Below, piece after piece: positions 15,020 to 56,886 of a stretch of DNA of 64,000 nt. The position numbers and the translations under genes are program-made. This DNA is from Laetmonice hystrix. Lineage: Eukaryota. The stretch lies in assembly GCA_965235115.1 (NCBI GenBank), contig OZ249436.1:60512001-60576000 (forward strand), given 5' to 3'. Within the stretch, counting starts at the first letter, position 1, and every line of letters starts with the position of its first letter. Under the pieces are notes generated by a model. The model worked only from the letters and a program-made list of their open reading frames with translations. It did not search any database and was not told the origin of the DNA.

Positions 15020-15109
15020 CAGTTGGCTCTCTTTTTGTGTCAGGTATGAGGCCTTGCCACTTGCAGCATTCCTATGTCGGCCGTCGTCTTGTGTCATCTC
15101 CCAACCTTG
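15020..15109 (+). other. Candidate recursive splice site with a 66-nt cassette exon (15044-15109)
   Basis: ctctctttttgtgtcAG|GTATGA at 15043|15044 and a downstream donor TTG|GTGAGA at 15109|15110. Confidence 0.45.
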
Positions 15110-16420: not shown

Positions 16421-16481
16421 CTGACTGACTCGACTGACTGACTGATGACTGACTGACTGACTGACTGACTGACTGACTGAC
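16421..16481. repeat. (GACT)n microsatellite, about 15 units, interrupted
   Basis: Read directly from the sequence. Confidence 0.95.
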
Positions 16482-23379: not shown

Positions 23380-23559
23380 GTCGGGGGTGGGGGTGGAGGT
23401 GAGCCGGGCAAACTGGGCACTCGTCCACGGCCACGCCTCACTGAGTCAGGCCGTCCAGGTGAACCCTATAAAAACACGGGCCATGGGACAGTCGACAGCC
23501 AGCCGGCCAGCACTCAGTGAACCGTACCTGGAGATTACGACTTGTTCGCGACCAGTCAG
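23380..23559 (+). promoter_or_regulatory. Candidate TATA-containing internal promoter and short first exon
   Basis: GGGGTGGGG boxes, AP-1-type TGAGTCA at 23442-23448, TATAAAA at 23467-23473, GC-rich downstream sequence and a possible donor CAG|GTACAT at 23559|23560. Confidence 0.3.
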
Positions 23560-26314: not shown

Positions 26315-27632
26315 CACATGGGGTGCAGTGGTATCCCATGGGGCGCAGTGGTATCCCATGGGGCGCAGTGGTATACCATGGGGTGCAGTGGTATCACATG
26401 CGGTGCAGTGGTATCACATGGGGTGCAGTGGTATCACACGGGGCGCAGTGGTATCACATGCGGTGCAGTGGTATCACATGGGGGGGGCAGTGTTGTCACA
26501 TTGGGTGCAGTAGTATCACATGCGGTGCAGTGGTATCACATGGGGGGGGCAGTGTTGTCACATTGGGTGCAGTAGTATCACATGCGGTGCAGTAGTATCA
26601 CATGCGGTGCAGTTGTATCACATGCGGTGCAGTGGTATCACATGCGGTGCAGTTGTATCACATGGGGTGCAGTGGTATCACATGGGGGGCAGTAGTATCA
26701 CATGGGCGGCAGTGGTATCACATGGGCGGCAGTGGTATCACATGGGCGGCAGTGGTATCACATGCGGTGCAGTGGTATCACATGGGGTGCAGTTGTATCA
26801 CATGGGGTGCAGTGGTATCACATGGGCGGCAGTGGTATCACATGGGCGGCAGTGGTATCACATGGGCGGCAGTGGTATCACATGGGGTGCAGTGGTATCA
26901 CATGGGGGGGCAGTGGTATCACATGGGGGGCAGTGTTGTCACATTGGATGCAGTGGTATCCCATGGGGCGCAGTGGTATCACATGGGGTGCAGTGGTATC
27001 CCATGGGGCGCAGTGGTATCACATGGGGTGCAGTGGTATCACACGGGGCGCAGTGGTATCCCATGGGGTGCAGTGGTATCACATGCGGTGCAGTGGTATC
27101 ACATGGGGTGCAGTGGTATCACATGCGGTGCAGTGGTATCCCATGGGGCGCAGTGATATCACATTGGGCCCAGTGGTATCACATGGGGTGCAGTGGTATC
27201 ACATTGGGCCCAGTGGTATCACATGCGGTGCAGTGGTATCCCATGGGGCGCAGTGGTATCACATGGGGTGCAGTGGTATCACATGCGGTGCAGTGGTATC
27301 CCATGGGGCGCAGTGGTATCCCATGGGGTGCAGTGGTATCACATTGGGCCCAGTGGTATCACATGCGGTGCAGTGGTATCCCATGGGGCGCAGTGGTATC
27401 ACATGGGGTGCAGTGGTATCACATGCGGTGCAGTGGTATCACATGCGGTGCAGTGGTATCCCATGGGGCGCAGTGGTATCCCATGGGGTGCAGTGGTATC
27501 ACATGCGGTGCAGTGGTATCCCATGGGGCGCAGTGGTATCCCATGGGGTGCAGTGGTATCCCATGGGGTGCAGTGGTATCCCATGGGGTGCAGTGGTATC
27601 ACATGGGCGGCAGTGGCACCACATTGGGCGCA
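26315..27632. repeat. 20-bp minisatellite (consensus CATGGGGTGCAGTGGTATCA), about 65 units
   Basis: Direct 20-bp periodicity with variants CATGCGGTGC, CATGGGCGGC, CCCATGGGGCGC and CATTGGGCCC. Confidence 0.97.
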
Positions 27633-30600
27633 TTGACGTCGCATTGGTCGCAGCGTGCGGCAGGTTGGTCGTGCGTGACGGCTGTGGTTAAGATCCTACC
27701 GTTGTATCAAGTCGATGATCCCCCTACGGCTGTCCAGTATCCGCCCAGCCTCACCTAATCTGAGGATCATCAGGGATCAACGCAATACCTGAGAGCACTT
27801 CAAAGTCACCGTGCAAACGTTCGGTCCGATCATTTTCACTGACATTCGGCACGAATCGTTCCTGAAATAGAATGTTTGTAACTTTACCTGATTTAAATTC
27901 AGACCTGCGCCAGAGTTCCAATCACGAAGGGATCGCAAGGGATACGGTTCAGTTTCCACTTGTAAAAGGTTGTCAATCGATAGGAAAAGACAACTCTGAG
28001 GAATCTGAAATGGGATTTTGATCAAAGACAACTATTTTCCCCGGTGACCATGTTAGTTTTTTTTAACATTTAACATAACTAAACGTCCTTTCTAGTACAT
28101 AATGTAAATATAGGATTAAATGTGTTAGGATGAAATGTGATTCATCGCACCTGGCGGGGGTAGTAGGAACTATGGCTAGTGGGGAGGGCGGCAGCTTATC
28201 ATAGGTATGGTATGTGTTAACGGGAACTTTGACTACGTGGGGGAGAGATTTTGTGTGATGTGTGCCAGCCAGCTGGTAGAAGTAGGAAGTACGATTCCCT
28301 CTCAGTAGAAGAGAGAACACTTGGTCTGTGTGCACCGTTTCAGAACACAGATCTCCATACGGCTGAACCCACTACGTCTTTGGAGAGAAAGTACTATGGC
28401 TCGACGAACACTCCTAAAGTGCACTGAAAAGTTGCCCTTCTGCTTCAATTCATCGATGGCATTTTACATATTATCTTTTTTTTCTGTAATAGACATGACA
28501 TGTGAGACTCCGTAGGGTTTACCGATAGGGGAAGCCTTAATAAGGCGGTCAGTTGAATGCGTGGTTCTCAGTGCCAGGTCAGCACTGAGTAAAGAAATCA
28601 AGTTAGAGGGGCACAGATCGTATGAACGTGTCGTTTGGATGGAGAGATGTATTCTGTGCGGACGGCGGGGGGTGAGAGTGGCCAGCTGGGCCGGGTTTGT
28701 TCACGCTTCCTGCCCTCAGGGTATGGACCGACACGGGATATTATAGATCCAATCTGGATCCTGTCATGTGAAGCAATAATCACCACGTGAAGCTCGGGTG
28801 TAGGATTACAGGTATCGGTAAGGCACACCTCAGTGGTGAAAGGGACAGGTGAGGCCGTTTTTAACAATAGCGCATGTAGAGGTTTTGTGAAAGGCTGAGG
28901 GTGTGTGTGTAGTAAATTACTTAGTCTTTAATAGCTCTTTTCGCCCAGTTTCTCTTAGAAAAAGATTTGTAATGTAGTTATCTGAATATAGCAGATTTTT
29001 TTTCGGGAAGAACGATGTTTTTTCCAGCATCTCTCTTTTTTTTTAGAATTACACGATAATTTGTTTTGATTATGTTTGTAAGGTTGTCATTTTCAGTGTT
29101 TGCCAAGTACCAGTCGATAGACTCATTCTGTCCTTGAAATCTCTCACATTATTTACGGTATAGATACCGGTCTAATTGAAGTGTCGGGGATGTTCTGTAA
29201 TATTACACAGAGCCCCGACAGCCTGGATACCCTCACAAGATAAAGTGGTTGTACCTGTAAGTTGTAATCCAAACTGGGTCAGCACCTGAACTGTGATCTG
29301 AACTGATATCATCATACACCCCCCCCCCCCTCCCACACCGTCCACGTTTATCTGTCAGCCAAAGAAGCCGACGTGTAACCATTCGGAAGAACACCACGCA
29401 GAATGGCGTTCTTGCTGGCAGCAGAAACCAAAAGACATGCCAAAGTTTGAGCGCACGAATGCATACAAGAGTCAATGATGGGGTCTTTCTTTACCCATGA
29501 ATTGCGTGATTAGTCAATTGCCTTGATTGCACAACACAGAATAATTGGTAATTGGACCTTTTTGATTCGAATGTTTTTTTAATCCATTTTTGACCGACTA
29601 ACTCCTGCGCGTGTGCGATGCAGCAGAAAGGCCAGATGAAAGAAATCGGTCGAACAGAGGACAGATGCCGCATTATTTGGTTGTCGTGTTCAATAGGGGG
29701 AAATTACTCACAGAGGTTTGCGAACAATCAAAGGGCAACCGTAGGGTCCTTGGGGCGGGGATACTCGGGATGAGGACCGACTATAGCAACAAAGATGTGA
29801 GGGAAACCGAAGGTAGACAATTGGGCTCCACCTCCCCAGGTAGAAAATATATGTTTCGGGGGTAGGACTGAACCTAGGTGTACAAACGGTCATTGTGTGT
29901 GTAACTAGAGCTTTATTTGGGTGACGTTAGGAATCGTGAAATATATCTAGACACACTTTGAGAGATGCAATAAATAACATTCATATTGTGTACTATCTAT
30001 ATTTGAGATCAATTAGGATACTCCTCTCAGTCAGTAGTTAATTGTGGCATATGAACTACTATTTCCTGATTACCTAGGTGATTAGAAATTCATAGATAAT
30101 GAGTATGTTGGTATCTTAACACTCGGAATCTATTTAGACTGAATATCATCTTGTTATTTAACAAACTAAAGTATTAATATTTTATGGTAGTTCCTTAAAA
30201 AAAATAATAATACAGTAGTGTGTTGTGTGTAAGTGTAGTGCCTGAGGACTAGAGTGACGTCAGGTGAGCGCAGGTGTGTTGCTGCAATCATCAACTAGGT
30301 CACAACCAGTGAGCCACAGCCAGACACTGGGAGGCTGTTGGCCATCGTCAAGGTACGCTGGCTCACCTGTATTACTGCTTCCATTGATGCTTGCTGGTGG
30401 TGGGCAGGCAGTCCACCTACCTTCAGTCACAGATGGCCAGCCTGTCAGACCTTACCGTACCTGGACAAAATTAGCGGATCACTACAGTACCACGGTTTCT
30501 ATGTGGGTTTTAAATCAAACCAAGGATATATTACTGGATTTAAAGGGACATGTCTCCAGGGAAATGTACGGTGACAGACACAACGGCTACTATCGTTACA

Positions 30601-33600
30601 ACCACGGACAGGATCGCCATACTGTGACACGCTTCGGGTAGGTTTTATTGCCAGCTGTTGTTCCATTGTTGCTGTCTGTTGTTCAGTGGTAGCAGACTTT
30701 TAAAAATCAACGGTTAAAGGAATAGCGTGAACAGCTCCGGCAAGGACTGGACGGGTGATTTCAGATTTTACTGTCGTCAGGATTCATTATAATTGAAGAT
30801 ATAAATCGTGACGCACACGACTATAAATTAGTGGGGCTTCAATATTATAGTGTTATTTACAGCCTTCAGGTGTCCGGATCATATAATATCTCTGTTTTCA
30901 AATTGACAGCAGGTCTAGACCGTAAGATTGAATGATTGCAGGAAACTCGGTGAGATTTTGACTGACAGTCGTCAGGATGTATCATAGTTTGCACGGGACG
31001 TTGAGTCATTGGTTTCCTGTGTCGGATTTTATTACTGGTTGCTCCGTCAGTGGAATTTGATATTTAAACAAATGAATATCAAATCAAAAAGGGATATGTT
31101 CAATAGGAAGGGGCGGGGGGGGGGGGGGGGGGGTAGAAAGCTTCTGCGTCATGTGATGGTTAGGCTACAGCTCAATGTTTTTATCACGACTAATGAATGA
31201 ATGTGGTGTTTCCCGAGTCCAGGTAGATACTGAGACCGAGGTGTAGTTGTCATGGTTTCAGCCCACGGGTCGTCAGGAGCCCACTGGTCGAGGTTGGCCC
31301 TAGGTTAGGAGGAAGGCCCCTGAGCTCTACATCATGAATGGTGGGTTGTAAGTGTGGGTACAAAGAACACTGGTAAACGTCATGGTTGACGTACAGCAGC
31401 AGTTTATATAGCAACGGTCCCACAAAGTGGATTACGGCAGGAGAATTCGTCGTTTGACGTGCAGCATTCTTGTCATCATGAACGGAGACTGATGTTGGTA
31501 GACGCTGTCTGAGGCGACCAGGCGGATTGAAGATCTGTAAGACAGACAAGGGTTGTGACCAGAGTCAGGTTCAGCCCGTATGTTCGAGGGTCACATTCTG
31601 CGACAGTAGAAAATATGACCGTTTCGAGTTGAGCTACTGTGTGACAGACAAGGGATGTGACAGGATTGACCAGAGTCAAACTCAGCCCTCTCTGTGACAG
31701 ATGAGGCGTGCAGCGCCCACCTGACATCTTGAGGCCGAAATCAAAACAACCACAGGCCATTGTTCCGCTCAATCAGAATTAAAATAATTGATTTCTGTGA
31801 ATAACACTTAATGAGCTCTTTGTGGCTTTCAAGCTCGACAGCTCTTCTTCCTGCACTGTATTCCAGCTTTCAAAAGTATAATTTTCTTTTTCAACCCTTT
31901 GCGGTTGTCTACCACTATTGAATCCTAAAATAAAACGTGTCCATGATTACTAGGAGTGGACATGAAGTGAAAATGGATCCACTACAAGAATTCCACATCG
32001 ATAAAATAACAGATCGATAAAAAGCTCCGTGTTAATCAAGACACCACCTGAAGCGAGAGAGGTGAAAACGCATCATGACATCCTGTGTTTTCAACAGTGA
32101 AACCAATTTCGTGTAGAACCAAAACGACGAAGAAAGTGATTTAATATATTCTGGTCGGACCCCACGCTCATTTCGTCTTTGATGCCACATGGGTATGATG
32201 AATTTACCGGGTTGTAACTCGAGTGTAATTGAACCCGGGGCCAACATGCAATCCTGTCATGAGAAGTAGCGGAGTTCATTAAACCATTGTCTGCTCGGAG
32301 ATGGAACCCTCTCTGGATGAAGGCCGATACCGGCTTTAATAACCCGTCAACAGAACACCTTAATAAAGGACAATAGATACCTGTGAAAGCTGGAAGGGGT
32401 AGGCGTCAGGGGGTACACAGGCTGTACGGGGACAATAGGGGTAGGTTACCCTCAAGGTGACGGCACGCCATTAGCGGCTCTTGCCAGGCAGTTAAGTGTG
32501 ACGTGCCAAACCCATATGTAACCATATGTAATTAAGGGTATACTGGTAGTATATATATATGTATATTGATATACCATCATGGTGTAATACAATATGCACA
32601 ATTAAACCGGAGGACCCTACTTCATCCTGTATTCTACCTCTGGCAGGCACGGAGTAAAAGCTTTCGACAAAGCATGGGTCCGGGCAAAATATATTTTCTT
32701 TGAAGTTAGTTGATTTTACAATAATTTATCTTTTCACCGGTGGACATGTCAAAGATAGCAATACCTCGAACCAGATGCTCCATCCGACCCGATAACACCC
32801 AAACGAGGGGGTATTTATAAAGGGAGACCTGCTTAGTGTCAGTGTCTATAAATGACACCTGTAAAACCTGATGGTGATGACAATCGACCAGCTGGGTGGT
32901 CGGTGTATCAGTATTGGATCAGCACGATGACCCTGCTGGTAATAGCCTTCGAACTCACCATCGATATCCTCAAATCTGATAACAAGCAACCCACAAAGTG
33001 ATGATGATATAATCTTATATTATATTACACAGCAGGAAGTATTAGGTTTATGATAAACCTTTGGAGCACCACCATTTACGTGTACTGGTTATGGATTAAG
33101 GAGCTGTTAATCTGACAGGACAAGTAATGTGTCAGTGGGGAATATTGGAAGGAACAGTGCACAGATGACATAATGGACAGAATTCATTACAGTGCCAGGG
33201 TCAGTCTGGCATAGTTAGGGTGGGATGCACAGCATGGGACTCCTCATTTGACCGTCCGTTTATGTGGCAAACAGGCTGGGGGCACACTGGACTATAATGG
33301 TTAATTTTGATTTTTATTACCAGTTGAATATTAGATTTAAATATGGCAAATCGCTGAGTCATCAGTTGATTTAAAATGCCAACACTGAAAACATAAGTTT
33401 CCTAGACTGTTGAGACGTAGCTCAAGGTCCTTGCTATTGTTTGGTACATGTTGAAGATGATTTTGTTCTCTCGCTCAGATCGACTCGGGAACAGTAAAAG
33501 TCAGAATCCGGTGAAAGATGTCTGTTGTTACACAGTGGTAATAACACAGAAAAACAGAACGCTTTCACTCGTTAACCCATGAATAATTTGACCGTTACGA

Positions 33601-35269
33601 GGTGTCGGTAGACTCATACAGTCAGGATATTAAAAGGTCATTAAGCTGACCCATTAAATGTCGTGTAAATGGGTCAGTATGGAGAATGGCAATCGGCCAG
33701 GGTAATTAATGAAATGCATGTATGGTATGAATAAAGGGGGCTTTTTTTAATGGAGGCCTGTCCCAGTTTGATCCATGAATCCTTTGATACTTTTACGTAC
33801 TGATTCATTTTCACAGAACCTGTTTCAGGTTCGACCATGATGTTAAATAAGTTGATTGAACATTTTCCTTGGTCGTATAAAGATGTATTACTTAAAGGTT
33901 TTACACCTGTAGAACGACTTCTGTGGAGGAGATAATTTTTCTGCTTTATGATGTGCAACATGTATGGCATGAGATCCCCCTCCCTCCTATACAAAAAGAA
34001 AACATTGGGTGCTTCGAGGTGTACGTAACCCGAAGCTACCCCCCAGTTTATGACTGCAATCTACTCGACTAACTTGAATACTTTAAAAGGAGTTATTATG
34101 GAAGGAGTCAGGGGTCAGGGGTAGCCCCAAACCATAATACAGCTATCCCTGAGTCCATTGACAGCCAAGAGGTGTGGTGTGACGGAAAGAAATCGTTGTA
34201 ACCCTTCCCTGGATGAACTGACCTTGGCACCAACAACTTCCGGTGGCGTTCTTTCCAATGGGTCGAGATCGTCTGATGTTGACCTTGGAGCGGTCAACCA
34301 ACCGTGGAGCAGCTAGTCCGGGTTGACCTCATGTCGCAGGTCACCGGCTGGGACAAACGGGATCAGTGGAGCAAGGCGGTCTTATGTCCTCACTGGATGC
34401 CAGTGTCACCCAAATAATCTTCAGCATGTTTTATGGAGGGAGAATTCGGTCAAAACTTGTAAAATCCCTCTGGAGTGTGCTGAGGAAACGATGCAAAAAG
34501 AACTCAATGGGATGACCTATTTTAATTTGGTGACTAAATACTGGCCCTGACGAAGTTGTTGGAACCAGGATGAGATTCAACCATTTTACCTTCAATAGTG
34601 AAAACAGGAGTTACCGCGTCTTCCGTCTGGAACGTTAGGTTTAATTATCCTAATCTAGAGAGCACCAAACAGTAAATAATACTAAATGACAATGTAAATA
34701 CTGCGGAGCAAGTGGATAAAAATGAAAATTTCAAATAAAACTCTAATCTTGTTCTAGAAGAGAGCGGTGGCCGTGGTCTGGGCGAGTCGGATGTTACCGG
34801 TGAAGGTTCAGCTGGTTGTTTAGTACCTTTTCAGACGCAGCTATTTTATTTCCATTTGATTTAATTAAATTGGCACAAACTAGCTGATATAATTTACAAT
34901 GGTAATGAAGAACTTCTTTACGTACGAATCACGTAGATGACGCTGCGTATTGAATGTACAATACTTCCTCGTTCAGGTGAATGATATGAAGCTTTTTAAT
35001 AGATTTCTTTTTGTTGGACGTCCTGTTTGGAATGAACGTTGCATAGCAACTAATTGCTGATTCTTGACGTGGTAGGCAGGTGTAACTGTGTGTGGGAAAG
35101 GTGGTCAACGTCCAGTTGACAAAACGTGGCCATGGTGTTGACACTGGTTGACAAGAAACTAATTAGACATGAAGTAGTACGGTAACCAGACCTAGCGAGC
35201 CGTGATGGTAACGGGAATTTGTTCATTCTAACGTCAGAAATACTGGTAATAAATATAAAGTTGGATGTT

Positions 35270-35570
35270 GAAAGGCTTTACCGTTATGCTGAAGAAACAG
35301 TTGTGCAGTCTGTTGGCCTCATCATGAATGAGAAAGTTAACCCGTAATTCACTGTGGCTGCCAGGCGGACTTGGTTAAGATGTTGGTTGGGTAAATTTTG
35401 TTGCTGATAGCTGAATGGAAACACTGGCAGTCATCAAAAAGTACAGGATTCCTCAAATATTCTGTTGGAGACGAATGTCAACAGTAACATTGGAAACCGT
35501 TAACTGGCTACAGCCAGCAATTAAGGTGGATTGACAAACCGAATAGGAAAACAACTTTCACTAATGGAGT
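35270..35570 (+). mobile_element. Highly decayed non-LTR retrotransposon (RTE-like) ORF2 fragment
   Basis: Broken frames give RLYRYAEETVVQSVGLIMNEK, then NG/ETLAVIKK/FLKYS, then NIGNR*LATASN*GGLTNRIGKQLSL. These are colinear with the recalled post-RT motifs VGLxINxKK, NGExLExVxxFKYLG and IxxRIAKAxxAFGRL. Confidence 0.4.
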
Positions 35571-36220
35571 TGGGGATTTGAGAGCAAACATGGAATGCAG
35601 TGTTTTCCTTAGGAATTTAGGCACACTTTTTTTTCCACACTTACTTTCCCGGAACTAATAACGCTATACTCAACCAGACAGCTCTCAGTTGCCATGGCCA
35701 CAAAGCCTTTGCGAAGCCTCGAAATACGAAATTTACAGAGACGATAGGAATTTGCCCTGAAGTATATTTGATAGCCATCGTTTACCTTGCTTGGATTTAT
35801 GGTCAGTGGAGGGGGTCAGATATTGAGTGGTCTGAAGAAGTGGTCCACCCGCCCTCCCCTCCCCGGTGAAGGGCCCTTGGTGTTAGTGGCACGTCGGCTC
35901 CGGTACCACTTAATGCGGAGTCGAGCCAATCTACTGATCGGTGGTCAGTCGTACACCGGTGACTGAGCCAGGCTTACCGTCGGTACACAGCTCTCGTCTC
36001 GTGGGCGGATAGACGAGGCTTGGAAAAGTAGACAATAATGATGTGAGGGATCAGGGATGGAAGGGGATCAGAGATGTCGCCATGGTGATAGCAATCTTCC
36101 ACCCTTCCCGTGAAATCCGGGGGTAGTCAGGGCGGAAATTTTTCAAAAGCAGGGTCCCATACTGAGTGACCCTTGCCCATGTCGTAGCTATGGATCCATT
36201 CATCCACCCATACATCTGTG

Positions 36221-36265
36221 CCCCCCCCCCCCCCCCCCCGAAGAAAAATCTTGGATCCGCCCCTG
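36221..36265 (-). mobile_element. Terminus of a CAGGGGCGGATCCA-type MITE family (a related end lies at 4599-4620)
   Basis: The minus strand reads CAGGGGCGGATCCAAGATTTTTCTTC followed by a poly-G run; 4599 reads CAGCGGCGGATCCACAGGGGG. The partner ends were not identified. Confidence 0.45.
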
Positions 36266-37524
36266 GTAGTACTCTAAGGTATGGCAACCTCGTTATTTTA
36301 AAAGTTTGTGTTGAGGTAGCATAGACTTTGCGAAGTATAGCAGATTACTGCTATCTGTACCGCACCAGAATTTTCCCGACCATTCAACTTTCGTTTGAAG
36401 GTAATCCCATCATGCACCCACAAGTACATGTATAAGCCGTGAGGAACAGATGTTTTTATTTGATTTTTTTGCACTCCGATAGTGGAAGTAGAAAATGTAC
36501 CGAGCTTGAAACGTAATACAACAGTAGCATCCTGAAAATCATGTCATCCATCTCCCTTTGAGTAGTGATACGTCTATGCCGTCGTTGGTGAACGAATGAA
36601 AAAGTGTCCGGCAGCGAGTTTGTTTGCGCTGGTGTCTCGCTAAATGAGGGCCGCCCTGGGTATAGCGTGTGTGTGTGTGGGGGGGGGGGGGGGGGGGGGG
36701 TTAGCGGCTTGTACCGCCGGAGGCGTCCACGACTGGCGGTGTAACTTGCTGGCAGTTAATCCTCTGGCCGCTTTGCAGGAGGGCCAAGTCTGACTGTTCA
36801 CAGGATTATCGTCAGCTTTGGGTGTGTCATCTGAGAGGTGATGATGCTGCTGGTACAAGTCGTGACGCTGGGCGTGTTATTCCGATCCTAGGGCCGGGTT
36901 CTTAGAGAGGTGCACATAGCATGTGAGTTATATTGGGTAAGCTTACAAGAATGAAAACATAAATTTTTCCGTCCCATAGTGTCCAGTGCATGTCTGAGAT
37001 ACTGGCCGTCTTCTTAGCAGGAACATCAGTGGTTGACCATAAAAAGAGCTCAGACGGAGCGCCGAGAGATAATAGTATGGAGAGTGGTGTAGTCGTTAAT
37101 GGAACTGGACTGGGTAATATCCGGTGCTGGATGGAAAGCTCCTGTAATTGCTTATGTGCAGGAAGTAGTCGACATTTGGAAAAGGATGCAGAATATTTTG
37201 CCCTTTCATGAAATCTGGAGAATATGCTGTGAAGCCGAGCGACTGTAATGACAATTACTTTCTGTCTCTGACTTGTAGGACGTTTGATGGTAGAAAGTCA
37301 TGCACTATTCTCGATTCCAAGCTCAGTATTCTAATACAGTATTCCTGTAGAAATATAGGAATGTAATTGCCTAATGCCAAACCGTTGAAGCGTAGACCTT
37401 CATTTCCAATATGTTTTCTTGCTGCAGTAATACACGTGCTGGCTTTTACGGAGAAGGATTATAGTAGTGCATTATTATCCAGTGTTGTAAAAATTATGAT
37501 TGGAGTGAGACCATGTAATAACTG

Positions 37525-37553
37525 AATGTTTTCTTTATGTGTTGCAGGTAAGT
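37525..37553 (+). other. Candidate recursive splice site (ratchet point)
   Basis: tgttttctttatgtgttgCAG|GTAAGT: a strong acceptor directly abutting a perfect donor consensus at 37547|37548. Confidence 0.55.
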
Positions 37554-40500
37554 TGTCTCTAAAACTCGGATCCGGACCATTGAAGAAGGCTGGGTGGCGG
37601 CCTCGGACCTAGTGGAAGTCCTCTGATAAGAATTTTTCTGCTACAAGTACAAGTAACAATTTCGGTTTGATTTTCTGTCTTTTGGGCCTTTAATGCAGTA
37701 TTGAGAGTAGGATAAAATCTCTGTATAATTCGTGCGACACATAGAGAAAAATATAATTAATGCACCTTTATATATTCCTGGTCCGTAACGCGTAAGTCTT
37801 CTCATTCATGCTGCAGCAACCTGTTTTAAATACGTGTGCCGTTGGTCGTATTGTTATTACACATCATAGATCTGTCAAATAGCACGTCGATTTAAGGCAG
37901 TGAAACACTTGGCAATAGTGAATACACAGGAATTGCCTCTATGACATTGGTTGTATTTGTTGATGAGATTCATAAAGTAAAGCAGTCATAAAGTAGAGTT
38001 AGATGTTTCTCTTTACCCGCAGTCTGATTTCGTTCCGGCAGAGCCACCAGATTGGCCTGATTCATGGTTAGTACTGGGTATGGCAGCAGGAGGTGTGCTC
38101 CAGACAAATTCTTCATTAATCCTGGCCTAAACTTGGGCGGATCATTAACGGTGCGGAATGACAGCTGGAACCTAACACCGGCCTAGGGTTCCCCAAAATA
38201 GCGCAGAAATAATGAAGAGTGCCCTGCTTCAGTTTTAGCTGCCAATCTGATCTGCATGGCCGACTCCGTTGGTGGTCGTAGTTGAACAGAGGGCTGGTCT
38301 GGCAGCAAATCTGTGTCTGCAGGTTCTAACATTACTACTGAAACTTGTATCTGGCACTGTTGCCGGAGTCGAGGCGTGGGTAGGGCCATATGTTGTCAGT
38401 GGTCGGGCACTCATGATTATGGGAATTAACCCCTCCGACTGGCAAAGAGATGTGATCGTATGGGAGTTTACATACAGATGGAAGCTGATCATAAAGGGAG
38501 CATTTTCAAAGAGAGAGGAAGGATTTCCACGAGTTAGCCAATTCAGCATAGTAATACAGTGTGTGAAATGAATAAATAAATAAATAAAACCATATTGAGC
38601 AGGTTGTCCGCCTGTAATTCCCCAAAATGCCTCTGTTATTTTGACCCGTGTATTGTTCATAATTTTGGGTGTTCAAAATTGGAAAAACCGCGGAATTTAA
38701 GGGCACGCAGCAATTTTCAATATTTTACAGTACTAGCAAGCTATCGTTTACTGGCCATATGGTCCCCAAAATTAAAATCCCATCCATGTTTGTAGAAGGA
38801 TATAATGTTGAGTTGCCGTTAAGCTGGATGGCGTCTTGCCATAATTTGACAACACCCGGCGCGCTGCCAATCCGCCTACTGGCAGGGTCGTCGGTCCCAG
38901 CATATCGGGCGCGTCCTCCAATTTCTTGGACCATTACTGGGCATTAGTGCAACGGTTGCAGTCTCTGGCTTATCATAGCACCAGACTTCCGGGAGACGGA
39001 CGTCCCTATCGGAATGAAGGCGGCCATGTTTGGTCCTGGGTCACACAAACTGTGGCGACACTCAGCCGGTTTATGATTCAGGGAGAGACACAAGAACTGG
39101 CGGGCTGTCCCCCTCGACAAGCTGCTGCCAAGACGATTTCCTTTGAAGGTTACTTGACCTCCAGTTAAACAGATTGCCCAAAGGCGGCACCCTAGTGCTG
39201 AGCGTCAACTGAAACAATTACTGTTTGGCATGTTACATACACCAGAAACTACCATACAGCAATGTTGATGGTCATATTTCCATTACATTGAGCTTTATTG
39301 TCTTCCGTCGGAAGTGGAATAATTGCTCTATACATAAAAGTATATGGCCTATGGGGGAAAATGGCTGGCCAGAATGCTTCTAAAACCTCAACCGCACTAT
39401 TAAATGACTGTCCTCTAGCGTTTTCATACCGAAGTTGTGCTTTGAGGGGTTTTCATATATAAAAGGAGCTGGTATAAGATTGATGGTACTCCAGTGCATG
39501 GTAACTGTATTATTGAACCTGGTGAAAATGGGACTTGTAATAGTGACATTAGCATGTGGGCAATTCTACGTCGTCTCAGTTTTCCGATATCGCTCAATTG
39601 CAGAGCAAACATTGTCATGGACAAATTTCTATGAGAGAAATCAATTTTGTTTCTGCTTGCAATTAGCATGATCTGTCGGTAAACATTTACATTGGTATGA
39701 GCTCAGTTTGCCAAGCTATCATGTTACCATAAAAGCTTAGATGAACCATCGCTGTTTAAGTCGTTGTCTCATGTTTTGCTCCTTTTTAAAGCCGTGATTG
39801 AAAATGAAAGAGTACAGGTCAGATTGGGCGTTCTGGCACGTAATGTTTCTCCATTGTTGGTTGATTCGTGTATGTTATTGATTGAGTGGTATTGACTTGG
39901 CGGCATACCCTAGAGGAGGCTGAGTATTGCCCCTCAGTCATCAATACACGTTTAGGTGGCCAAACAGTCTCAGTTTCCAGAATGAAGGAATTAGTCGAAG
40001 TCAATGATGAAAGCTTCGGGTATGAGGGAGTTTATAATTCATTCCTGGATACGTTGACAGGCCTGCGTTGTATCCATCAGGTTTCAAGTGGAGGACGCGA
40101 AGTGAGTGCTTCAGAGCTTTAGGTTTAACCCAATTTCCCTGAAATGTTAGGTACTATTTAGCCTGTTTGATACAGCCATATAACCTGAGTCACTAAAACT
40201 ATAGTAAAAGTTATGCAAATGCTCTTAGTGACCCAGAGTCTAAGCTGCTTGGATAACTCTCATAATGTTCGAGGTGCAGTTATAGTTTCTATCCCGAAAC
40301 ACCTGAACCCGAGCTGGTCTGTTGATGATACCGCACCATGTAGTCCTAGTCCGTGCAGTAATGTTACTGCCGTGGTCATTTTCCTCAAATGCGTAATCGC
40401 AGGTGGAACAACGGCAATTTTTTTCATCACCGTAATTGGTAGGCTACATGGTGACCTTGCTTGTCACGAAGACTTTTTGCTACGCAACTGAAAAAGGTCA

Positions 40501-43500
40501 TCAAGTCGGTTGTAGTGTACAAACTTCAAAAGCTCCTGCAAAAGGTCTATGCATACCAGCATAAGAGGAAAGACATCGAAAATAGCCATGGTGCTTCCCG
40601 AAAAAGAAACGGTAGTATGCCTGAATTTAGTCAATTGCAGAATTTGTTGTGGAGTTCTTAAAGACAACAAAGAGATGTGGATGCCTGTTGCCTCCCCAAG
40701 CGTTCCCTAGTTGGACAGGTGTTAGCGTTGTGTTTCTTACAACGCTTTACCTGAGACTGTCGGCGTGGGCGGTACGGGGCGGCCTGCGGGGATCCAACAG
40801 ATTAGTTCCAGGTAGGTGGCCCAGGTAGGGTGCCTGAGTCAGTACCAAACTATGCTGGCCTGTCTGAAACCGCCTGCCTGATCCTCACACAATGTCCTAG
40901 ATTGGACACACCGGGTTGTTCACGGTACCAGAAAGGTTTCATTAAAAAAAACCCCACCTATTTAGTTACTGTCCCAACATCACGGCTGCCGGGTTTATTT
41001 CGTGGTCGTTACAATGGGCGTTTAGTGCCTGTGGTCCCATTGAACCTCGAGAGGCAGGTCTCTAGTCGAGATTTACATTTGTATGCGAACTCAGTTCGGC
41101 AGTATGTTCCTATTCGTGTTCCCACCGTCTGTGAATACGGAATAACCCCTACACATATACCGTCAGCAGAAACCGTAGATGTAAACAGCAAAACGGAATT
41201 TTGATTATTCTAATTTTCATATCACATGTGATGTCAAAAATCGAATACCGGACTTTGAATGCGATGCATGGCATTATGTGGTGAAGATCTGGTAGTGGAA
41301 ACCTCAGACCAGCAGAGTATAATTAATCGCCGTCCGGTACAATTTTCAGGGCAGTTTGAACGTTGGAGATCTCATTGGAGTTGTTTTAAGTGACAGCCGA
41401 CAGAAAGTCAGTGTTTATTGTTATGACGAGGTTGATGGGGAAACATCCAGGGCACGACTGCAGGACCTGGAGAGGTCCAGTGGTCACGGCAATAGGGTCA
41501 GACGCTGAGGTCGGTATGTGACCTGTTTTGTCCAGGACCCAGTATCACGACAGCGACGCCTCGATAACCTGGTTAGACCAACGAGTATAGAATGAAGAAA
41601 ATTGTTCCAGCTGAAGGATAGCTTAGGATAGTTATTACACCATTTTGGTTACATACCGGTAGTTATTTTGTAATGACGGGCAGGGATAATGTAGGCCACA
41701 CATCTAAACATGGTTGATCCGTGAAAAGTGATTCCCTCATTATACTGTATCATGGGATTTACCACCACGATACACTTACACCCATTATATCTGGGCCCCA
41801 GATATAACGGAGGTCAGGAGACTGATGAATGGCTTTCCCGACCAAGGTGTAGAGGAGCAACTACCAGATATACATGCATCTGTCAGACATGACACATTTA
41901 TCTACGGCTGGGTGGAAAGTGTTGGACCTATCTATTAGATTACCTGGAGAGCGATACTGGTGATCGGACATTCCAGCTTTATATTTTTTTCCGATAATAC
42001 TAAGTGTAGTGAACTGCATGATGCGAAGAAGCTTAAAACACATTTTGTGGATTGATATGTGAGTTTTGAAATGCATAAACATGGAACAGGGAGCGCCACT
42101 TGTAGCCCAATACAATTTACAGTCTTCACAGCGATCATGCAAAAATCTGCTTGAGTGCTTGTATCGAGTATTCACGTTTAAAAAATCTTTTATTCATTGT
42201 AAGACCAGGAGGTTTTTTGTGATGTTATACTTTATTGGATTGGGATTTTGTTCTCCAAAAGCATATAGGGCCTACATGTATGTTGTAATTCACGTGGTAG
42301 CAGCAAAGAAACATGATTTCACACGGCTCTCCCGAACAATATCAGTATACCATTATGCAAATAACGCCCTCTCCACAGACATTCATTGGTATACTTGATT
42401 TCCACTTGCTTGGTAACTTCTGCAGAGTCGATCACGGCGGAAAAAGAACTTGTGGTTCCTTTATAAAATGACCGGAAGTTGAGGTGGGAGGAGACCTGGA
42501 AGATAATTTATGGTGTAGTGAAAGTGAAAATACAGGTCACTGTTTGCCTGACTCGGGTACTGGTTGTATTTTGGGTGCGGATGTACTGGGTGTGTTTTAT
42601 ACGGGATGGAGTATTGCCAAGGTGTGGATCAAAAGGTCGCCGCTGCACGAATGTCGCCACTGTAGGTGCGTGCATGGCTGGAGTTTTCAGCATCGAGAAA
42701 AAGGAAAACGGGTCGCTTTCCTGAATCCAGAGCCACAGGTCAGTGGAGGAATTTGTTGTGGTGGTGAAGTCAACCTTAATTGATTGAGAACATTGACCAT
42801 TAGAGGGGATGCTCCCAGGCCAGGTCAGCCAACAGCTGCTGGCTATCTTGGCCTGCTGGTACAGTAGGCACAGTGACTGGTACTCTGTTTGGTGAGCACC
42901 GGTCCGTCGGATCACCTGCCTCCAGCACCATTCGGCAGATTCTTAATTATTACCCTAAGGAGTGTAGCGCACACATATTGTGGAGTATAATTTACGAAAT
43001 ACAATTACTACCGGCTGAATTGTGTATCTTTGGGCTAAATCGCTAAGACATTCAGTGCATCACATCCTCATCTGTAATCACCAGTTTATATACAATAGAG
43101 GTAAAAGATTGTGTCATTGCTACTGTTATAGTTGGCGACAGTCTTGGTCAGGTTGTACGATTCAAATAACCTAAGAAACATAGACTTCAGCGGCGTGAGC
43201 ATAGAGAAAACGAAGAGGTTTTTTTTACCCATAAATCAAAGTGACATAGAAATGAATAATGATGTATTGACATTAGAAATGAATTAAGTACCTGCCCTCT
43301 CTACTTGGTTCCGGTTCTATATGAGCCGTATTGCCTGTCATGGCTATGAGCTGTAATAGCTCCATGAAACCACCAGAATTGAATTATGGCTGATGATTAT
43401 CTGACGCGGGAGACACTTGGCAACATGATGTTAGTATGATAATATTTGATCGACGCTCATACCGGACATGTCAGGGCGCTGTATCAATTGCCCCGCCAAA

Positions 43501-43992
43501 CATACGCAGACGCACACAAGTAGATGTATTTCCGACGTTGTTATTGAACGTGACATATTTGACGTAACATAGGCCAATCAGTCACGAACCTCCTGACGTC
43601 ACGAACTTGCTATATTTGGTTCAGGTTGGATGGTCTGCGCGGGGGGTAGTTATGTAGTAATTGCTACAGGTGATGTGAGATGATTTGTGTAGGCGAGACG
43701 GGTATCGCTGGAAAGTGCTACCTTTGGATATGAAGATTTATTTTTGGAAGGAGCCTTAATTAGGTGTGCTGTAAGAAGTGTTGTGTATTGCACTGATGAC
43801 GTCTGTGGTCCTACAACAGGATGAATGGACGGATCTGTAATAATGCCTGCAGTGGGGACTGCCTGCTGAGATTGTGAGAGCCTTAGAATCCTGTGTGCGA
43901 TAGTGGATGAAGCCTGGAGCTCTCTGACGGATCAGTTCTGGCCGGTTGTTAGTGGCGGTGATTGAGACCAACATTGTCAGTGGCATTAGAGA

Positions 43993-44071
43993 CCTGGCTA
44001 GCATTGTCCTTGTTATTACAGTCCTGGCTATCATTGTCCTTGGCATTACCACAGTCCTGGCTATCATTGCC
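43993..44071. repeat. 30-33-bp tandem repeat, ~2.5 units
   Basis: CCTGGCTA(G/T)CATTG occurs three times. Confidence 0.85.
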
Positions 44072-46495
44072 TACTCTTTGGCATGAAAATAAACCTCCAA
44101 CGAACCTTGGCCGCGGGGGCGAGGTCCTGGAGATTATTGACTGTGGTAGTGAAATCTCTTGTTTATTAACCTAATGGCATTGGCGCGATAAGGGTAGCCC
44201 TATAGGTGGTGTTGATAACCCCGGTTACTCACCCTGAATAACCCCAACCCCAGCCCGGTCACCCCACCAAGACCTGTATCGTGTTGAATCTATTGACATA
44301 TTTGTACTACAATGCCATTCTGATGTATACAAACAGAATTAACCTTGCTAACTTGTCACCAAGTTTGATGTCGTGGTATTTGGCCTATCTAGCATTGGCA
44401 CAGGATTCGTATATGAGGAAGTAGGGAAGTAAGTAAGCTCATTAATTTTAGGTTAAGATCGGCGGAGATTTAACTTAGATGGCCAGCGCCAGCGAATGAG
44501 TCCGCAGGGGCGACGGGGACAACGCTAGATAGACTGATCTATATCAGGAGCAAAAACTGTATATCCTTTTTACACCATACATTCACCAGGAGAGTATAGG
44601 ATTTGTAGACTTTATGTAATGTATGTGCCCATTCATGACATGACATGAGCACTGCAGCTCCCGTCTCATCATCAACGGTGTGTTGTTTTCTTGGTGATAC
44701 TCCAGGGAGATAAGTTTGGGATGAGATGGACGAAGCCTGAGTTTGGACGTTAATGATATGAACCACCATGATAAGGACCTGTTTCACTGGGTCTCCTGGG
44801 GGTACGAGTCCACTGGGCCAGGCTTGAAGTGGGACCGATACGTCGACAAGATAGCACCGATGGAGACGCATTCTAGGCATTGCTAGCCGGTGATAAGACC
44901 GACCCAGAAGCGGAGGCAGAAGCTGGAGTCTTGGCGGGCTTCTTCCGGCCTGAATTCCTGGACAGTTTTTGCCACAAGGTATTGCTCACCCCTACACCCT
45001 TTCGGACTGGGGCTACTTTGATGTCCGTATCATAGCCGCTGCAGTCAGATAGTTCTTTCGTTCCAGATGTCGGTGGCTCCTGGCTGGTTTCTTTAGTTTA
45101 GGAATAAGGTCGACAGACCTTAGGATAACGTGTAGAGTGGATATAAGTTAGGGTGAAGGGGGGGGGGGGCAGAATCTTGTCATCTGTCCCAGTGCTATAA
45201 CTAGAACCATGGTTATGTAAAGCACGAAGGTGTACAACGGCTGCTAATTTCGTGGAGTCTTCCGAAAGTTGTGATTGAGCCTGAAGTCTGTAGCGGAGTG
45301 TGGCAGCCATGTAACAGAATGTGACCTTGCCCACCTTTGACATGGGCCGGCGGACTGGGGTCAGCATGATGACCAGCTCCGTTCGCGCCACATAGTAAGC
45401 ATGTTTACATGGGACGCTCCGAGGACATGAAGGGACAGACTGGCCTGGAAAATAATACATGGTATCCGGGGGGAGTGCAATCACACGCAGGACGTGCCCC
45501 CACGTCGCCGGGCCAGTGGGATAAAAACGGCCTTGTCGATGAGAAGCCACCGCTCGAAGTGTTTGCATACAGGTCTATGAGATGAGGTCTATACAGGATT
45601 GTACACCCCAGGGAAATGTCGATGTGGGCAGTGTGACCTTCACTCAACATTACGTTCGCCATGGTTTGGATTGGTTGTTTGCATTGGAGAGATTGACATG
45701 GTTTGGACGGAGGGAGATCGCATGTTACGACTGCTGGCCTTGACAATCGCCATCGCCGCACCCATCGGAGAAACTTATCAAGCGGTAGTTGACGCTTGAT
45801 TGACGTCTCTGAGTATGGCATGTAAATAAAGTAAAGTAACTTTTATATGGAATACACTATGGCGTGTATCTGATCGTTATCTGATGGCATGCAACTCATG
45901 GCGTGCAACTGGCATATCTGAGTTGTTTTAAGTAGCGGACAGCAAGCAACCTGCCGCAGTGTTTGACATGGGGTCAGGTTGGCGGCAGGTTGTGGCGGGC
46001 ATGTCTTGACGGTAAACGGCAGAGTACAGACCCTTGCATTTGTCATCTCGTCACAGTGAACCGGGCATGCTTGGAACACGTGTAGAACAATGCCTGCGGC
46101 ATGTAAAGGGCACCTCAATTGTCACGGCGTCTGCGTTTTTTGTCCGTCTTTTCTCCAGGCTTCTACCCCCCCCCCCCCCGACCGCCGCTCGTCTGCGTGC
46201 TTCACCCCCTCATTAACGTACAATTAAAGGTGTCAGAGTGCGGGGTTATAGAAGCCAGAGAATGCGGCGCCGGGGTCCCCAGGGGGGCCAGCACGGCCAT
46301 TCAACTGGGTCCGTCCCGGGGCATCCCGACCCATGGGCCCATGTCAACAAGCGGGACCCCCGACCGCAGTTTTTACCCCGGCTCCGAGCAGGCGACCTGT
46401 GACGAGCAACATAAAACCAGAATAATGGGGTTTTGTTGTTGGCATTGTTACGGGGGAACAAGAGGCCTGTGACCGTCTCTACTGGAACTAACAGG

Positions 46496-46576
46496 TGTAT
46501 TGTGGCTAGCGTTAGGCCGGACAGGGCGGGTCAATGTATTGTGGCTAGCGTTAGGCCGGACAGGGCGGGTCAATGT
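46496..46576. repeat. Perfect 39-bp tandem duplication
   Basis: TGTATTGTGGCTAGCGTTAGGCCGGACAGGGCGGGTCAA occurs twice. Confidence 0.95.
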
Positions 46577-48597
46577 GGGATGACGGTTCCCCATCACTGA
46601 TTTAACACAGCAGGACGTGATGGCCACCACGACTAGAGTTACAGGGTCAGAGAACCTGCTGGAGTGTTCATTAGAACAGACTGATGGAGACAGGGTCAGT
46701 CGAAAGGTTAAACGCTCATATTGAGGAATCGTTAAAGGGTACGTGTAAAAAGTTCCAGCGTCGGTGAAGCTCTCGGCATGGCGTGGCGATGCAATGATGG
46801 CAGTGCCACCTAGGAAGGGACAATGAAACTATATTATTTGGCGTGAACACTAGATGTCGCCCATGTATTCATACACAGCACTGAGAGCAAGGCCATTGAA
46901 AGATCCCACCCAGGAATTTCGGAGGAGGGGGAATTGCTCCTCATGTGAAAAGTACATGCAAGAACGCTCCAAACACGGATTTAATGGAATTGCCATACCA
47001 TTGTTTAGTGTAGGGGTTTTACTGTTCAAGTGTGTAATATCGAATTGGATCATTTGCTTTTAGATATGGTTGGCCCATATTGTAATGAGAGATTATCCAC
47101 CCTTTGTAAGGGTGTAGACCTCTAGGCCTACTGGACGAGGAGAAGGGGATTTAGAGCCGCCTGATGTCTGTCTCCATAGTCTTTAGACTATTTTCAGGAA
47201 TCGACGTGTTCCGGGGCATATGGAGCCTGTTTAGATGCGCCTCTTACAAATTTACTGTTCATTGGTGTGTGTGTGTGGGGGGGGGGGGGGGCGCTCTAGA
47301 GACCAAGAGGGACTAAGGTGTCAAGGTACCTTTAGGGAGGACCATAGTCGATGATCTTCCAACCCCGATCTCCTGTCAGTCGGTTGTCCTCATCGCCAGA
47401 TTCAATTGGCTGTCAGCCGAGCCAGACGGAGTGGCCGAGCGCTCAGATTGCGTATGACAGGGTAGGCCTATAAAGTGACACCTGGTGGAGGAAGAAGAAC
47501 GAAGCTACAGTTGCGCCATCTGGTGGCAAATTGATCGTAACTGCAGGACTGACGGAGGGGAGTCGCTGTAGTATCAGTGACAAGATGACCGAGCTAAAAG
47601 CTTGTACTGGTAATTATTCCCGTACAAGATGAGTAGATGATTGTAACTTTTCAAATTAGTTTTTTTTTCAATGTAGTCAATAACTGGAACAGGTATTTGA
47701 TAAATTAATATTCACTTAGTCTTAGAAGAGGATTTTCTTGGACATTGCCTAAGAGCTGTTTTGTTTATATTGACTGGTTTTAATCATTTCATGCCCTACA
47801 TATTTTGACCTTTACAACAATCGTTTTTCAAAATGCTTTATATATGAGATTCAGAGAGACAAACATTTAGACTCTTGCTCCAGGCTCTTGCGCGGATTGT
47901 TCGGGATTGCAGTAATTTTGTTACAGACCTTGAAGGCATCTGTAACAAAGCCGACATTTCAGTTGAAAATTATTAGTAGAAAAAGTATTAAGTGAGCTGC
48001 TTTGTTAAAAGTGTTTTCAAGTCAAGCGTGTAGTTCTCTTGTACGGCAGGCATTTATTTGATCTCCCTCAGGGGATATGTGTAACACTCCTGGAAGTGAA
48101 GTGTCAATCTTAAGTGTTTCACGGAAAGGACACGAACCTGAAACAATCCAAGAATCACAATGTCAATTTACGTTAGTATTTTATTGGCGAAAATGCAACG
48201 TCGACAGCGTGTGATGTTCAAATGACTTATTCGAGGTCGAGACGAAAGAAATCTTATTAGAAGCCGAGACATAAATAAATTAGTACAATCATATTGTTCA
48301 CTCGAATGTATATCCTTGATAAAATCAGTGTTGTCATGGAGTATTGTGTGCAGTACGGCATTATGTCTTGTGGAATCTACTTAAAGCTGATTTATATGTG
48401 CAGTTATGTTACGTGAGACTGGTTCCCAGATTAAATGGATTAGGGCTCTAACCTGTAGTACCTTCGAGCACGGGTAAAGTTTAGTAGCAGACTTGTATTG
48501 AGAGGGAAAGCTGGCACCGTACTGTTGAAAGATCAATGGTGTACCGTAGCAGCTGTTCTCGAGAGTTGGCTACCTTCAGCTTCTGCTCGGTTATACG

Positions 48598-48712
48598 AGC
48601 CTGTTAGCGGCTCAAGGCAGCCAACAAACAACCTGTTAGTGCTAAGGGGCCACTGCAGCCAACGGCCTGTCAGTACTAAGGTGCCATTGCTGCTAACAGC
48701 CTGTTAGTGCTC
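48598..48712. repeat. Degenerate ~33-bp tandem repeat, ~3.5 units
   Basis: CCTGT(T/C)AG at 48600, 48632, 48666 and 48700, with GC(C/T)AAC near the end of each unit. Confidence 0.75.
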
Positions 48713-51133
48713 TATGTAGTAGAGACGTTTTCATCGGACATCTACATTTTCTTTTAAGATAAAGTCTGTTTGTCTTCTTTTCATCACAAAGTTGTCTTCT
48801 TTTCATCACAAAGTGGCGAGGTTATCGAGATATTATAGGGCTTGTATTACAGGTCGGTTGGACCTATGTTAGCAATCTACACTACGCTTTGTTTTAACAA
48901 TAGAGAATATGTACAATTTGGAAGACGTTCTGTCTACATTTAACAAGAAACGAGTACCTGTCGCCCGTTTGTATTTAAGCTGCACTCGGTATTAGACGCC
49001 CGTGTCTGGGGTCACCAACAATAGTTGGCGCGAGCTGGGAGACAGGGAATGAATGAGTGGTTTGACATGACAGGAACTGCTGCCAGCCATGCCATGCAGT
49101 GTCACTCATTGAACTGGTGTGAACGCCATCGTGCCAAGCGTCAATGCCCATTCAGCATAGGGGTAGAGCTGCTCAGGGTTTCTACATGATGCTACTTTAA
49201 TTAGACAGCTAGGTCGAAGAGTGTACCTTCTAATTACAGAACGTACAGTCAATTTCGTGTTAATGAGTGAGAACGAGACAGAATCACTGTTAGCAGGTGC
49301 ACTGTAGCTGCAGAGATCAGGTTCAGGCATTACAGAGTAGTGTTTGGACTTACGTTTATTAACATTTCTCTTGAGAAAACAGTATAGCCAGTATTGTGCA
49401 GGAATAAAATATTAGAGATACAAGAAAATCTTATCAGTGTCCGAGTGGGCTTCACCTTCCAACCACTCACAACATGCATACACTCTACCCCAGCGAAAGA
49501 CGTTAACATTACCGGAGCTTGAAGTCTACGTCAGAAAATGTGGGGGGGAATCGAGTTCCCAGACCCAATAACGGTAAGGGTCTCTTGGAATAATAATTAT
49601 TAATGTCGTGATGAATGTTCCATGGAACTAATCCTTACCGGCGTCAAAATGTGGCTCCCTGGCGCCAACTGTGATGACAAACAGCTCTTTATTGAAAAAT
49701 TTCTCAGACAAAAATATGTTTACCTGAGCCCGTGAACATAGATCATTACAGATCATACTGTCTCCTCCGCATTCCATGAGATGAACATTACGACAGGTGA
49801 AATCCTAGCGGTAATTAGTCAGAGTTAGGGTAAGCATTGCCACAACAGGGATGAGGCAAGCAACAACGAGCCGGATTAACTTAACCGCCCACGTGCAGGC
49901 ATATAATGATCTATGTGTTATCCTTCCAATTCTAGTAATATTTTGCATGGAATATTACCTTCTTTTAGTATTCTGCAAGGAGCTATTCATGGCCAACCAG
50001 GTGTTTGTACATGCCAGAAACAGGGGAGATTTCTGGTCTTACGTAATCAAAATTACAAATAGGAATTGTAAGACATCGTCGTGTATTTAATTTGCCCCAT
50101 AGTAAAATATATTGCGTTTTGTCAATTTGAAATGAACAACACCAAGGTTTATTTCCATAAATTTCAAAACCAAATTGGTGGAAGTAGACCGGTCAAGGCC
50201 GGAGAAGCAGGACAGCGGAATAATGGTTTTGTGAAGACATTGACAGAACCGCCATGGGGAAGTTGTTGGATTGTGAGGAATGGCTCGATGGTGAGATACA
50301 CTAATGGAATGGAGGTTGGCTGTGCTCTACTGGTCTCCGTTGGGACTGCTCCTCTCACGGCTGAGGTGTTGGGTGGGTTGGGGGGCGGACCTTGTTAGGG
50401 ATGGCGGCGGACGGCTGGGCGCCAGTGACGGAGGGCCAGGGTCGCGGGTTTGGCCTGGCACTGATGGCACCAGCATCACAACACCAGGTCGACATTAAAG
50501 ACTCTTCGACCTCTTAATGTTTTTGGCCGGTGACTCCTGCTCCACACCCCACCACCCGTGACCATCGAAGGCCCCCCTGTAATGATAAGTGTCAGAGGTA
50601 GGAGCTGTGGCCCACACGTTTTCGCTCTGTTTACTGGAGTACCAGTACGGTAACCTACGTATTCTCTCAGAAATACTGTGAGATAAGATTGTTAGGAAAG
50701 AGAAAAGGCAGTGTTGTCGGATTGGCATGGCAGGTAGTGTCCGGAAAGTCATGTATTATTCGGGTTTACGTTATATAAGTTGGGATTAACATGGCGAAAA
50801 TAGTTGATTAAGATTAGGAGTGTATGAATTAATGTCGTACGTGAAATCCTATAATGTTTGAGAGAGGCACAAAGATGGGATATATGTAGTGAATCAGCTT
50901 GGGTGTACCAGTGTATGTTAATGGCTCAGCGTGACCGTTACTGGGTATCAACTGGTATCTAATTCAGTTACATGTGTCAGAACATAACTTTTGCAAATCA
51001 CAAATTTGATAATACTCCGAATGTCAAGTCATTCTACTGAAGAGATATTGCTGGATACATAAACTATCTTAGATCAGATGATTATGTGTATGTTTCGATT
51101 TTTGTAACGTGAATCTTTGTTGTTTGTTTTCAG

Positions 51134-51209
51134 TTTTGGTAAGCGGACAGCAGGATGTGTTCGACGACCGAACGAGTGCCTTATTCTCGAACCATCCGAG
51201 ATGATAGTG
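51134..51209 (+). CDS. RAPGEF2: Coding exon of RAPGEF2/6-like (cNMP domain, second half)
   Basis: tctttgttgtttgttttcag| acceptor and GTG|GTGAGT donor. 76 nt; the first t completes AG|T (Ser) from the previous exon, then FGKRTAGCVRRPNECLILEPSEMIV. Matches the recalled RAPGEF2 SFGKRSAGSFRRGCECIVLEPSEMIV. Confidence 0.93.
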
Positions 51210-56658: not shown

Positions 56659-56886
56659 CTGCCCCCAGAACTTCAGAATGTCCAGTCTGTTCTTCAGCGG
56701 AGCGAGCAGTTCCTGCGAAGTGAACACTACCTGAAGCGGAACTCGCGAGCAAGTGACACGTCCAGTGCGTACTCAGGTTCGGACATGATGCAGTCTTCCA
56801 TAGACGACCAAGACCTTGACCTTACTGGACTTCCTGAAACTCTTGTCGATTCCGATGATGAAGAAGGATATGTTGAAACGTCAGAG
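56659..56886 (+). CDS. RAPGEF2: Coding exon of RAPGEF2/6-like (Ser-rich/acidic linker before the second cNMP domain)
   Basis: ctcctattgcag| acceptor and GAG|GTAAGT donor. 228 nt, phase 0/0, reading LPPELQ...SDTSSAYSGSDMMQSSIDDQDLDLTGLPETLVDSDDEEGYVETSE. Similar to the recalled RAPGEF2 DMDLSGLPETAVDSEDDD. Confidence 0.9.

Follow-up and report, generated by a model that had tools for sequence, protein, structure and literature searches.

The host gene and its long intron

The window, by which we mean the whole 64,000-nt stretch of DNA analyzed here, carries exons of a RAPGEF2/6-like gene on its forward strand. The candidate splice site that is the subject of this study lies within a long intron of this gene:

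10305..10388, + strand: exon A, upstream, cNMP-binding domain of the RAPGEF2/6-like gene, with the donor CAG|GTAGGT; the ortholog in a relative (rel1) has the same boundary
10389..51133, + strand: host intron of 40,745 nt, sense-strand GC skew +0.10
51134..51209, + strand: exon B, downstream, encoding FGKRTAGC..., with an amino-acid identity to relatives of 84-88%
56659..56886, + strand: exon C, a linker exon of 76 codons, employed as anchor in the search for relatives

Exon A has the sequence RGELCTCWYILLSGSVFIDGSMFLPRS, its last codon being incomplete with two bases, while exon B reads FGKRTAGCVRRPNECLILEPSEMIV. Both exons are present in rel1, where position and phase of the intron are identical. 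The identity of the gene was deduced from the named homologs of exon C and from domain matches in relatives. The homologs, found in a clam and in spiders, are annotated as Rap guanine nucleotide exchange factor 2 or 6. Among matches that carry a name, the best is a bivalve protein, and downstream reading frames in the relatives' contigs match RasGEF_N, PDZ and RasGEF. Pfam and PDB matches of the small exons A and B alone were weak (E 0.25 and 0.34) and were not used for this purpose. Based on these similarities, the host gene is a PDZ-GEF (RAPGEF2/6) ortholog and its cNMP-binding domain is split by the 40,745-nt intron. Throughout the host gene the sense strand contains more G than C, in the window (1-64000) as well as at the relatives' loci L092, L095, L096, L099, and L100. 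Comparison of the 40.7-kb intron with rel1 revealed no conserved coding segments, and an Rfam search of the 64-kb window gave no match.

Several repeats were observed within the intron. A short dispersed repeat of ~135 nt is found at 36135-36270, 1.3 kb upstream of the candidate site. At least 40 scored copies with an identity of 78-89% occur among 357 genome-wide candidates, and the DNA contig depth over this repeat reaches thousands. The 20-nt unit TCACATGGGGTGCAGTGGTA is arranged in tandem with ~66 copies (26314-27632), and this array gives rise to open reading frames of up to 412 residues that are spurious. At 18933-19577 and 21273-22049, two arrays with a repeat unit of 157 bp have opposite orientation and constitute the arms of a foldback-like element.

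Anatomy of the candidate site

The candidate site is located on the sense strand at a depth of 27.2 kb within the intron and comprises the following elements, given together with the sequence downstream:

37522..37526, + strand: candidate branch point CTGAA as predicted from the sequence, 21-22 nt upstream of the AG, with no intervening AG
37527..37544, + strand: pyrimidine tract TGTTTTCTTTATGTGTTG, made up of the run TTTTCTTT, ATGTG, TT at -6/-5 and G at -4
37545..37547, + strand: acceptor CAG, read from the sequence
37548..37553, + strand: potential re-formed 5' splice site GTAAGT, which together with the end of exon A reads CAG|GTAAGT
37548..37791, + strand: sole RS-exon candidate with a consensus donor, 244 nt, weak; in the frame of exon A its second codon is a stop
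37792..37797, + strand: downstream donor CGC|GTAAGT at +244, the first G of which reads C in contigs from two of three DNA runs

On the + strand the site reads TGTTTTCTTTATGTGTTGCAG|GTAAGT, i.e. a T-rich tract is followed by CAG (37545-37547) and directly by GTAAGT (37548-37553). The tract contains an 8-nt pyrimidine run (37529-37536) and TT at 37542-37543. It is interrupted, with pyrimidines at 13 of 20 positions and four purines in -7..-20. The longest reading frames across the motif comprise 28 residues. CAGGTAAGT occurs once in the 64-kb window if both strands are searched, and CAG|GTAAGT is the only nonamer of its kind there. In a search of the 627-Mb genome, the 401 nt surrounding the site find no copy but their own and are thus single copy. 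This result is meaningful, since the same search recovers the neighboring ~135-nt repeat at 40 or more places.

A first-pass annotation of the same DNA had described a strong acceptor fused to GTAAGT in sense orientation within a 40.7-kb intron. The sequence at 37527-37553 is exactly as described, and 40,745 nt separate the ortholog-supported exons A and B. The immediate stop AG|G TAA it had predicted is found as well: if the two-base end of exon A is joined to 37548, AGG TAA results. Its term 'textbook' suits the core motif, but neither the interrupted tract nor the lack of a decoy donor at about +50. The proposed division of the intron into pieces of 4.7, 22.5 and 13.6 kb is arithmetically correct; however, the partner site at 15043 (window 15040-15048) reads TGTCAG|GTATGA, with a weak donor and no TT at -5/-6, and falls outside the enriched motif class described below.

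Such a decoy donor, which would close an RS-exon, is absent near +50: the best score in +25..+80 is -2.8 bits, corresponding to the 29th percentile of control windows. Further downstream, CAA|GTAACA at +104 and AGA|GTAGGA at +161 are the other donor candidates besides that at +244. The sequencing runs retrieved for this stretch were three DNA runs of one sample; aligned to 35548-39547, they gave one contig per run over 37156-39547 with even depth. The motif is identical in the contigs of all three runs. Two of the three represent a second allele that differs at 37492-94, 37734, 37792, 37799 and other places, and one of these two differs additionally at 37578 and 37584. The G>C exchange at 37792 abolishes the +244 donor, the sole consensus donor on the downstream side. 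Given a heterozygosity of ~1%, the intact 27-nt motif across runs is uninformative either way.

A class of fly-type sites in the genome

Genome-wide, we searched for a class pattern of eight pyrimidines, 0-8 nt and TTNCAG|GTAAGT. This yielded 175 rows. On one strand these correspond to 39 distinct sites; the 136 rows of the opposite strand overlap and were estimated to represent ~58 distinct sites, as 68 listed rows collapsed to 29. The class amounts to about 85-100 distinct sites, the 37548 site included. Control patterns gave 4 distinct sites (donor moved by 1 nt), 7 (donor moved by 2 nt) and 19 (pattern reversed). The fly-type motif class is strongly over-represented, 5- to 20-fold against these controls and about tenfold above chance.

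The verdict on enrichment varies with the definition of the class, and enrichment emerged upon requiring TT-N-CAG. YAGGTAAGT as such is not enriched (10,491 vs 12,358 occurrences for the reversed pattern), and many of its occurrences lie in tandem arrays. Eight pyrimidines at most 10 nt from YAG|GTAAGT are not enriched on contig C1 either, where 27 distinct sites compare with 29 if the donor is moved by one base. Ten pyrimidines followed by NYAG|GTAAGT gave 39 sites vs 19 and 11 in controls, an excess of only 2- to 3.5-fold. We attribute the null result of the broad pattern to dilution by TAG and non-TT sites. The pattern YAGGTAAGT-N{30,60}-GTRAGT was discarded as uninformative, since tandem arrays dominate it. 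Under the broad patterns, a chance origin of the 37548 site had appeared the somewhat more probable reading; this rating was lowered once TT-N-CAG was required. A second motif of this broad kind in the window, a sense-strand TAG|GTAAGT at 56624-56632, precedes the exon C acceptor by only 32 nt. Its pyrimidine tract is poor and it lacks TT-N-CAG, so that it falls outside the enriched class.

For flank analysis, 66 class members were retrieved. GT[AG]AG is present at +25..+80 in 32 of them, and 14 further members carry a GTAGG, GTATGT or GTAACA donor above the 90th percentile of control windows. By either criterion, 46/66 members possess a decoy donor at +25..+80, at a median of about +50, while ~10-15% would be expected. 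A GTRAG-only criterion is too narrow, as GTAGG-type donors are frequent and the donor of exon A itself is GTAGGT. Since the genome is unannotated, the direction of transcription was approximated by GC skew; in three introns of known direction the G>C strand is the sense strand (+0.10 here, +0.04 and +0.06 in relatives). On this strand we found 57/66 members, and 16 of the 20 members that lack a decoy. In both decoy frequency and strand, members whose -7..-20 region contains three, four or more purines resemble the rest. With the exception of one duplicated pair (L016, L017), the flanks of all members differ; consequently, the class is not a repeat family.

Some members are arranged in series on the same strand:

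C11:18294368-18356747, - strand: four sites at 18.294, 18.311, 18.335 and 18.357 Mb, 17-24 kb apart
C2:22233065-22297306, + strand: three sites
C3:8308735-8391812, + strand: three sites
C2:49677400-49696448, - strand: a further same-strand series

Spacing within these series is 17-57 kb, and at most sites a decoy donor follows ~50 nt downstream. The fourth C11 site (L142) has no decoy and its first GTAAGT stands at +234, comparable to +244 at the 37548 site. Judged by these features, the series sites on C11, C2 and C3 are much stronger candidates for recursive splicing than the 37548 site, and the genome holds a real population of sites that resemble fly-type ratchet points. Of the 20 decoy-less members, about 2-13 would be chance sites according to the controls, and a few ordinary exon ends are possible as well; together these might make up much of the group. 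We estimate that between a third and two thirds of the decoy-less members are not due to chance. For the 37548 site, the odds within this group are raised by its position deep within a 40-kb intron, on the sense strand.

The orthologous intron in relatives

The orthologous region was rebuilt in two relatives, with exon C as anchor and in 10-kb steps. In rel1 (ENA ERZ25069296), amino-acid identity is 81% for exon A, 88% for exon B and 78% for exon C, and with an exon nucleotide identity of 70-78% it is a distant relative. Its orthologous intron of 22.1 kb contains no site that combines a pyrimidine tract with a good donor, and it has no nucleotide similarity to the 40.7-kb intron. The same holds for rel3 (ENA ERZ24900295), where neither a comparable site nor nucleotide similarity was found in the 23.5 kb upstream of exon B, exon A being located beyond the examined span. 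A third, compact relative has an intron of only 1.56 kb at the orthologous position, and in the closest relative on record (ENA assembly ERZ26222911) exon C shares 94% amino-acid identity. The first-pass annotation had held that absence of the motif from close relatives, combined with a lack of splicing intermediates, would speak against recursive splicing. The motif is indeed absent in two relatives, but both are distant and their introns are too diverged to be aligned, so that this absence would count against an ancient conserved element and not against a younger one.

The rel1 intron was further observed to contain a copia-type LTR retrotransposon (gag, integrase, RVT_2; L095:1070-4857) in antisense orientation to the host gene. 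Both of its LTRs contain AAG|GTAAGT.

Discussion

The 37548 site is in many ways similar to known recursive splice sites. Drosophila intronic ratchet points are zero-nucleotide recursive splice sites (bioRxiv 10.1101/006163; PMC8605326; Pai et al., PMC6110457) with TT at -5/-6 in 196 of 197 cases (Duff et al., bioRxiv 10.1101/006163), and the fly RS-exon is a short cryptic exon of about 50 nt that is closed by a downstream donor (Joseph et al., PMC8605326). Like these, the 37548 site joins a 3' splice site to a strong 5' splice site (CAG|GTAAGT), has TT at -5/-6, is found in sense orientation within an intron >20 kb, is followed by stop-containing sequence and belongs to an enriched class. The resemblance to Drosophila extends to the class as a whole, with its decoy donor ~50 nt downstream and its evenly spaced same-strand series. 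In contrast to fly ratchet points, however, the 37548 site lacks a cryptic RS-exon donor around +50, its tract is interrupted and its host is a non-insect invertebrate.

With vertebrate RS-exons (PMC6224609; PMC6110456) the site has in common that the re-formed 5' splice site would open a cryptic exon, which upon inclusion would carry a premature stop, and that the host is a long intron in a long, signaling-type gene. Unlike in vertebrates, the only consensus donor downstream gives an exon of 244 nt, and this donor is polymorphic in the sequenced animal. Of the poison RS-exon postulated in the first-pass annotation, the stop is retained, whereas a decoy donor near +50 is absent and the +244 donor is polymorphic.

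We suggest that the 37548 site might function as an intronic ratchet point of the fly type. Its 3' splice site would be formed by the candidate branch point, the T-rich tract and the CAG ending at 37547. Once transcription has passed it, exon A would be spliced to 37548, and the first 27.2 kb of the intron would be removed. The re-formed junction CAG|GTAAGT would constitute a perfect 5' splice site that is paired with the acceptor of exon B, and a second step would remove the remaining 13.6 kb, leaving zero residue in the mRNA. Splicing from a donor further downstream would be expected to produce an insert starting with AGG TAA and a nonsense transcript. Segments of 27.2 and 13.6 kb are consistent with the spacings of the class series. 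Since the site belongs to an enriched class that is mostly found on the G-rich, sense-like strand, recursive splicing is a reasonable reading. We infer both that the class may be spliced recursively and that its decoy-less member at 37548 may be used.

Among the alternatives, a chance juxtaposition of acceptor-like and donor-like halves in an unconstrained 40-kb intron has to be considered most seriously. Such a site would be unused or used sporadically, and sporadic use would be harmless, since each splice to its acceptor restores a good donor. Intrasplicing of a stochastic or background type, at AG|GT sites that occur fortuitously in introns, has been discussed (bioRxiv 10.1101/2024.12.11.627982). 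The 37548 site resembles these as an intronic AG|GT, absent from two distant relatives, with possible occasional harmless use, yet its motif surpasses a generic AGGT by far in strength and its class is under apparent selection. While the nine-base core is not more frequent than its reversed control and the loosely drawn class shows no excess over the offset control, the strict class exceeds chance 5- to 20-fold. The three controls predict that 4-19 strict-class members arise by chance genome-wide, and nearly all of these would be decoy-less like the 37548 site; however, 16/20 decoy-less members reside on the sense-like strand and one of them (L142) belongs to the clear four-site series on C11. 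The G- and T-rich sense strand favors a G/T-rich motif through composition alone, although only ~1e-4 to 6e-4 such sites are expected on the sense strand of a 40.7-kb intron. If, in addition, the lack of the motif in the long orthologous introns of two relatives and the polymorphic +244 donor are taken into account, a chance origin is quite possible while falling short of probable.

An unannotated ordinary exon boundary, be it the end, at 37547, of an alternative first exon or an untranslated exon, or the start of a poison cassette exon (e.g. 37548-37791), seems rather improbable. The junction at 37547 would place an ATG at 37537 in the frame of exon B, but stops occur in all three frames at most 40 nt upstream, no rel1-conserved coding segment exists in the intron, and neither Rfam matches nor other features were found near 37548. 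The first consensus donor downstream would define a stop-containing exon of 244 nt; this donor is polymorphic. Ordinary exon ends with a pyrimidine-rich tail would not be caught by our motif controls. Finally, a site inside a dispersed repeat or mobile element with splice-like signals, which the first-pass annotation had named as a possible refutation, is close to refuted itself, as the 401 nt are single copy and DNA contig depth across the site is at single-copy level, even though the intron contains the ~135-nt high-copy element (~36135-36270), the 157-bp arrays and the 20-nt array.

Recursive splicing, as proposed in the first-pass annotation, is thus partly supported by an enriched, sense-like class, but weakened by the missing decoy donor and by the absence from two distant relatives. 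Taken together, we consider it an even call that the 37548 site is a used or selected recursive splice site. A more far-reaching idea would be that this site and roughly one in five class members, those without a decoy, are true zero-length sites that are recognized without an RS-exon in a spiralian. This we regard as unlikely; if true, recursive splicing would not be confined to insects and vertebrates, and a mode independent of exon definition would exist.

The literature searched reports recursive splicing from insects and from vertebrates, and in line with the first-pass annotation we found no description of it in annelids or molluscs there. On its own, the 37548 site is a plausible, yet modest and unproven example, of which the mechanism is known and the lineage is new within that literature. 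It adds RAPGEF2/6 as a candidate gene and provides a borderline case, with a perfect core and no decoy exon, to test the need for such an exon. If the roughly 90 fly-type sites of this genome are used, long introns would be removed stepwise in a third major branch of animals, the spiralians, and the architecture known from flies, with TT at -5/-6, CAG|GTAAGT and a decoy exon of ~50 nt, would be much more widespread than documented.
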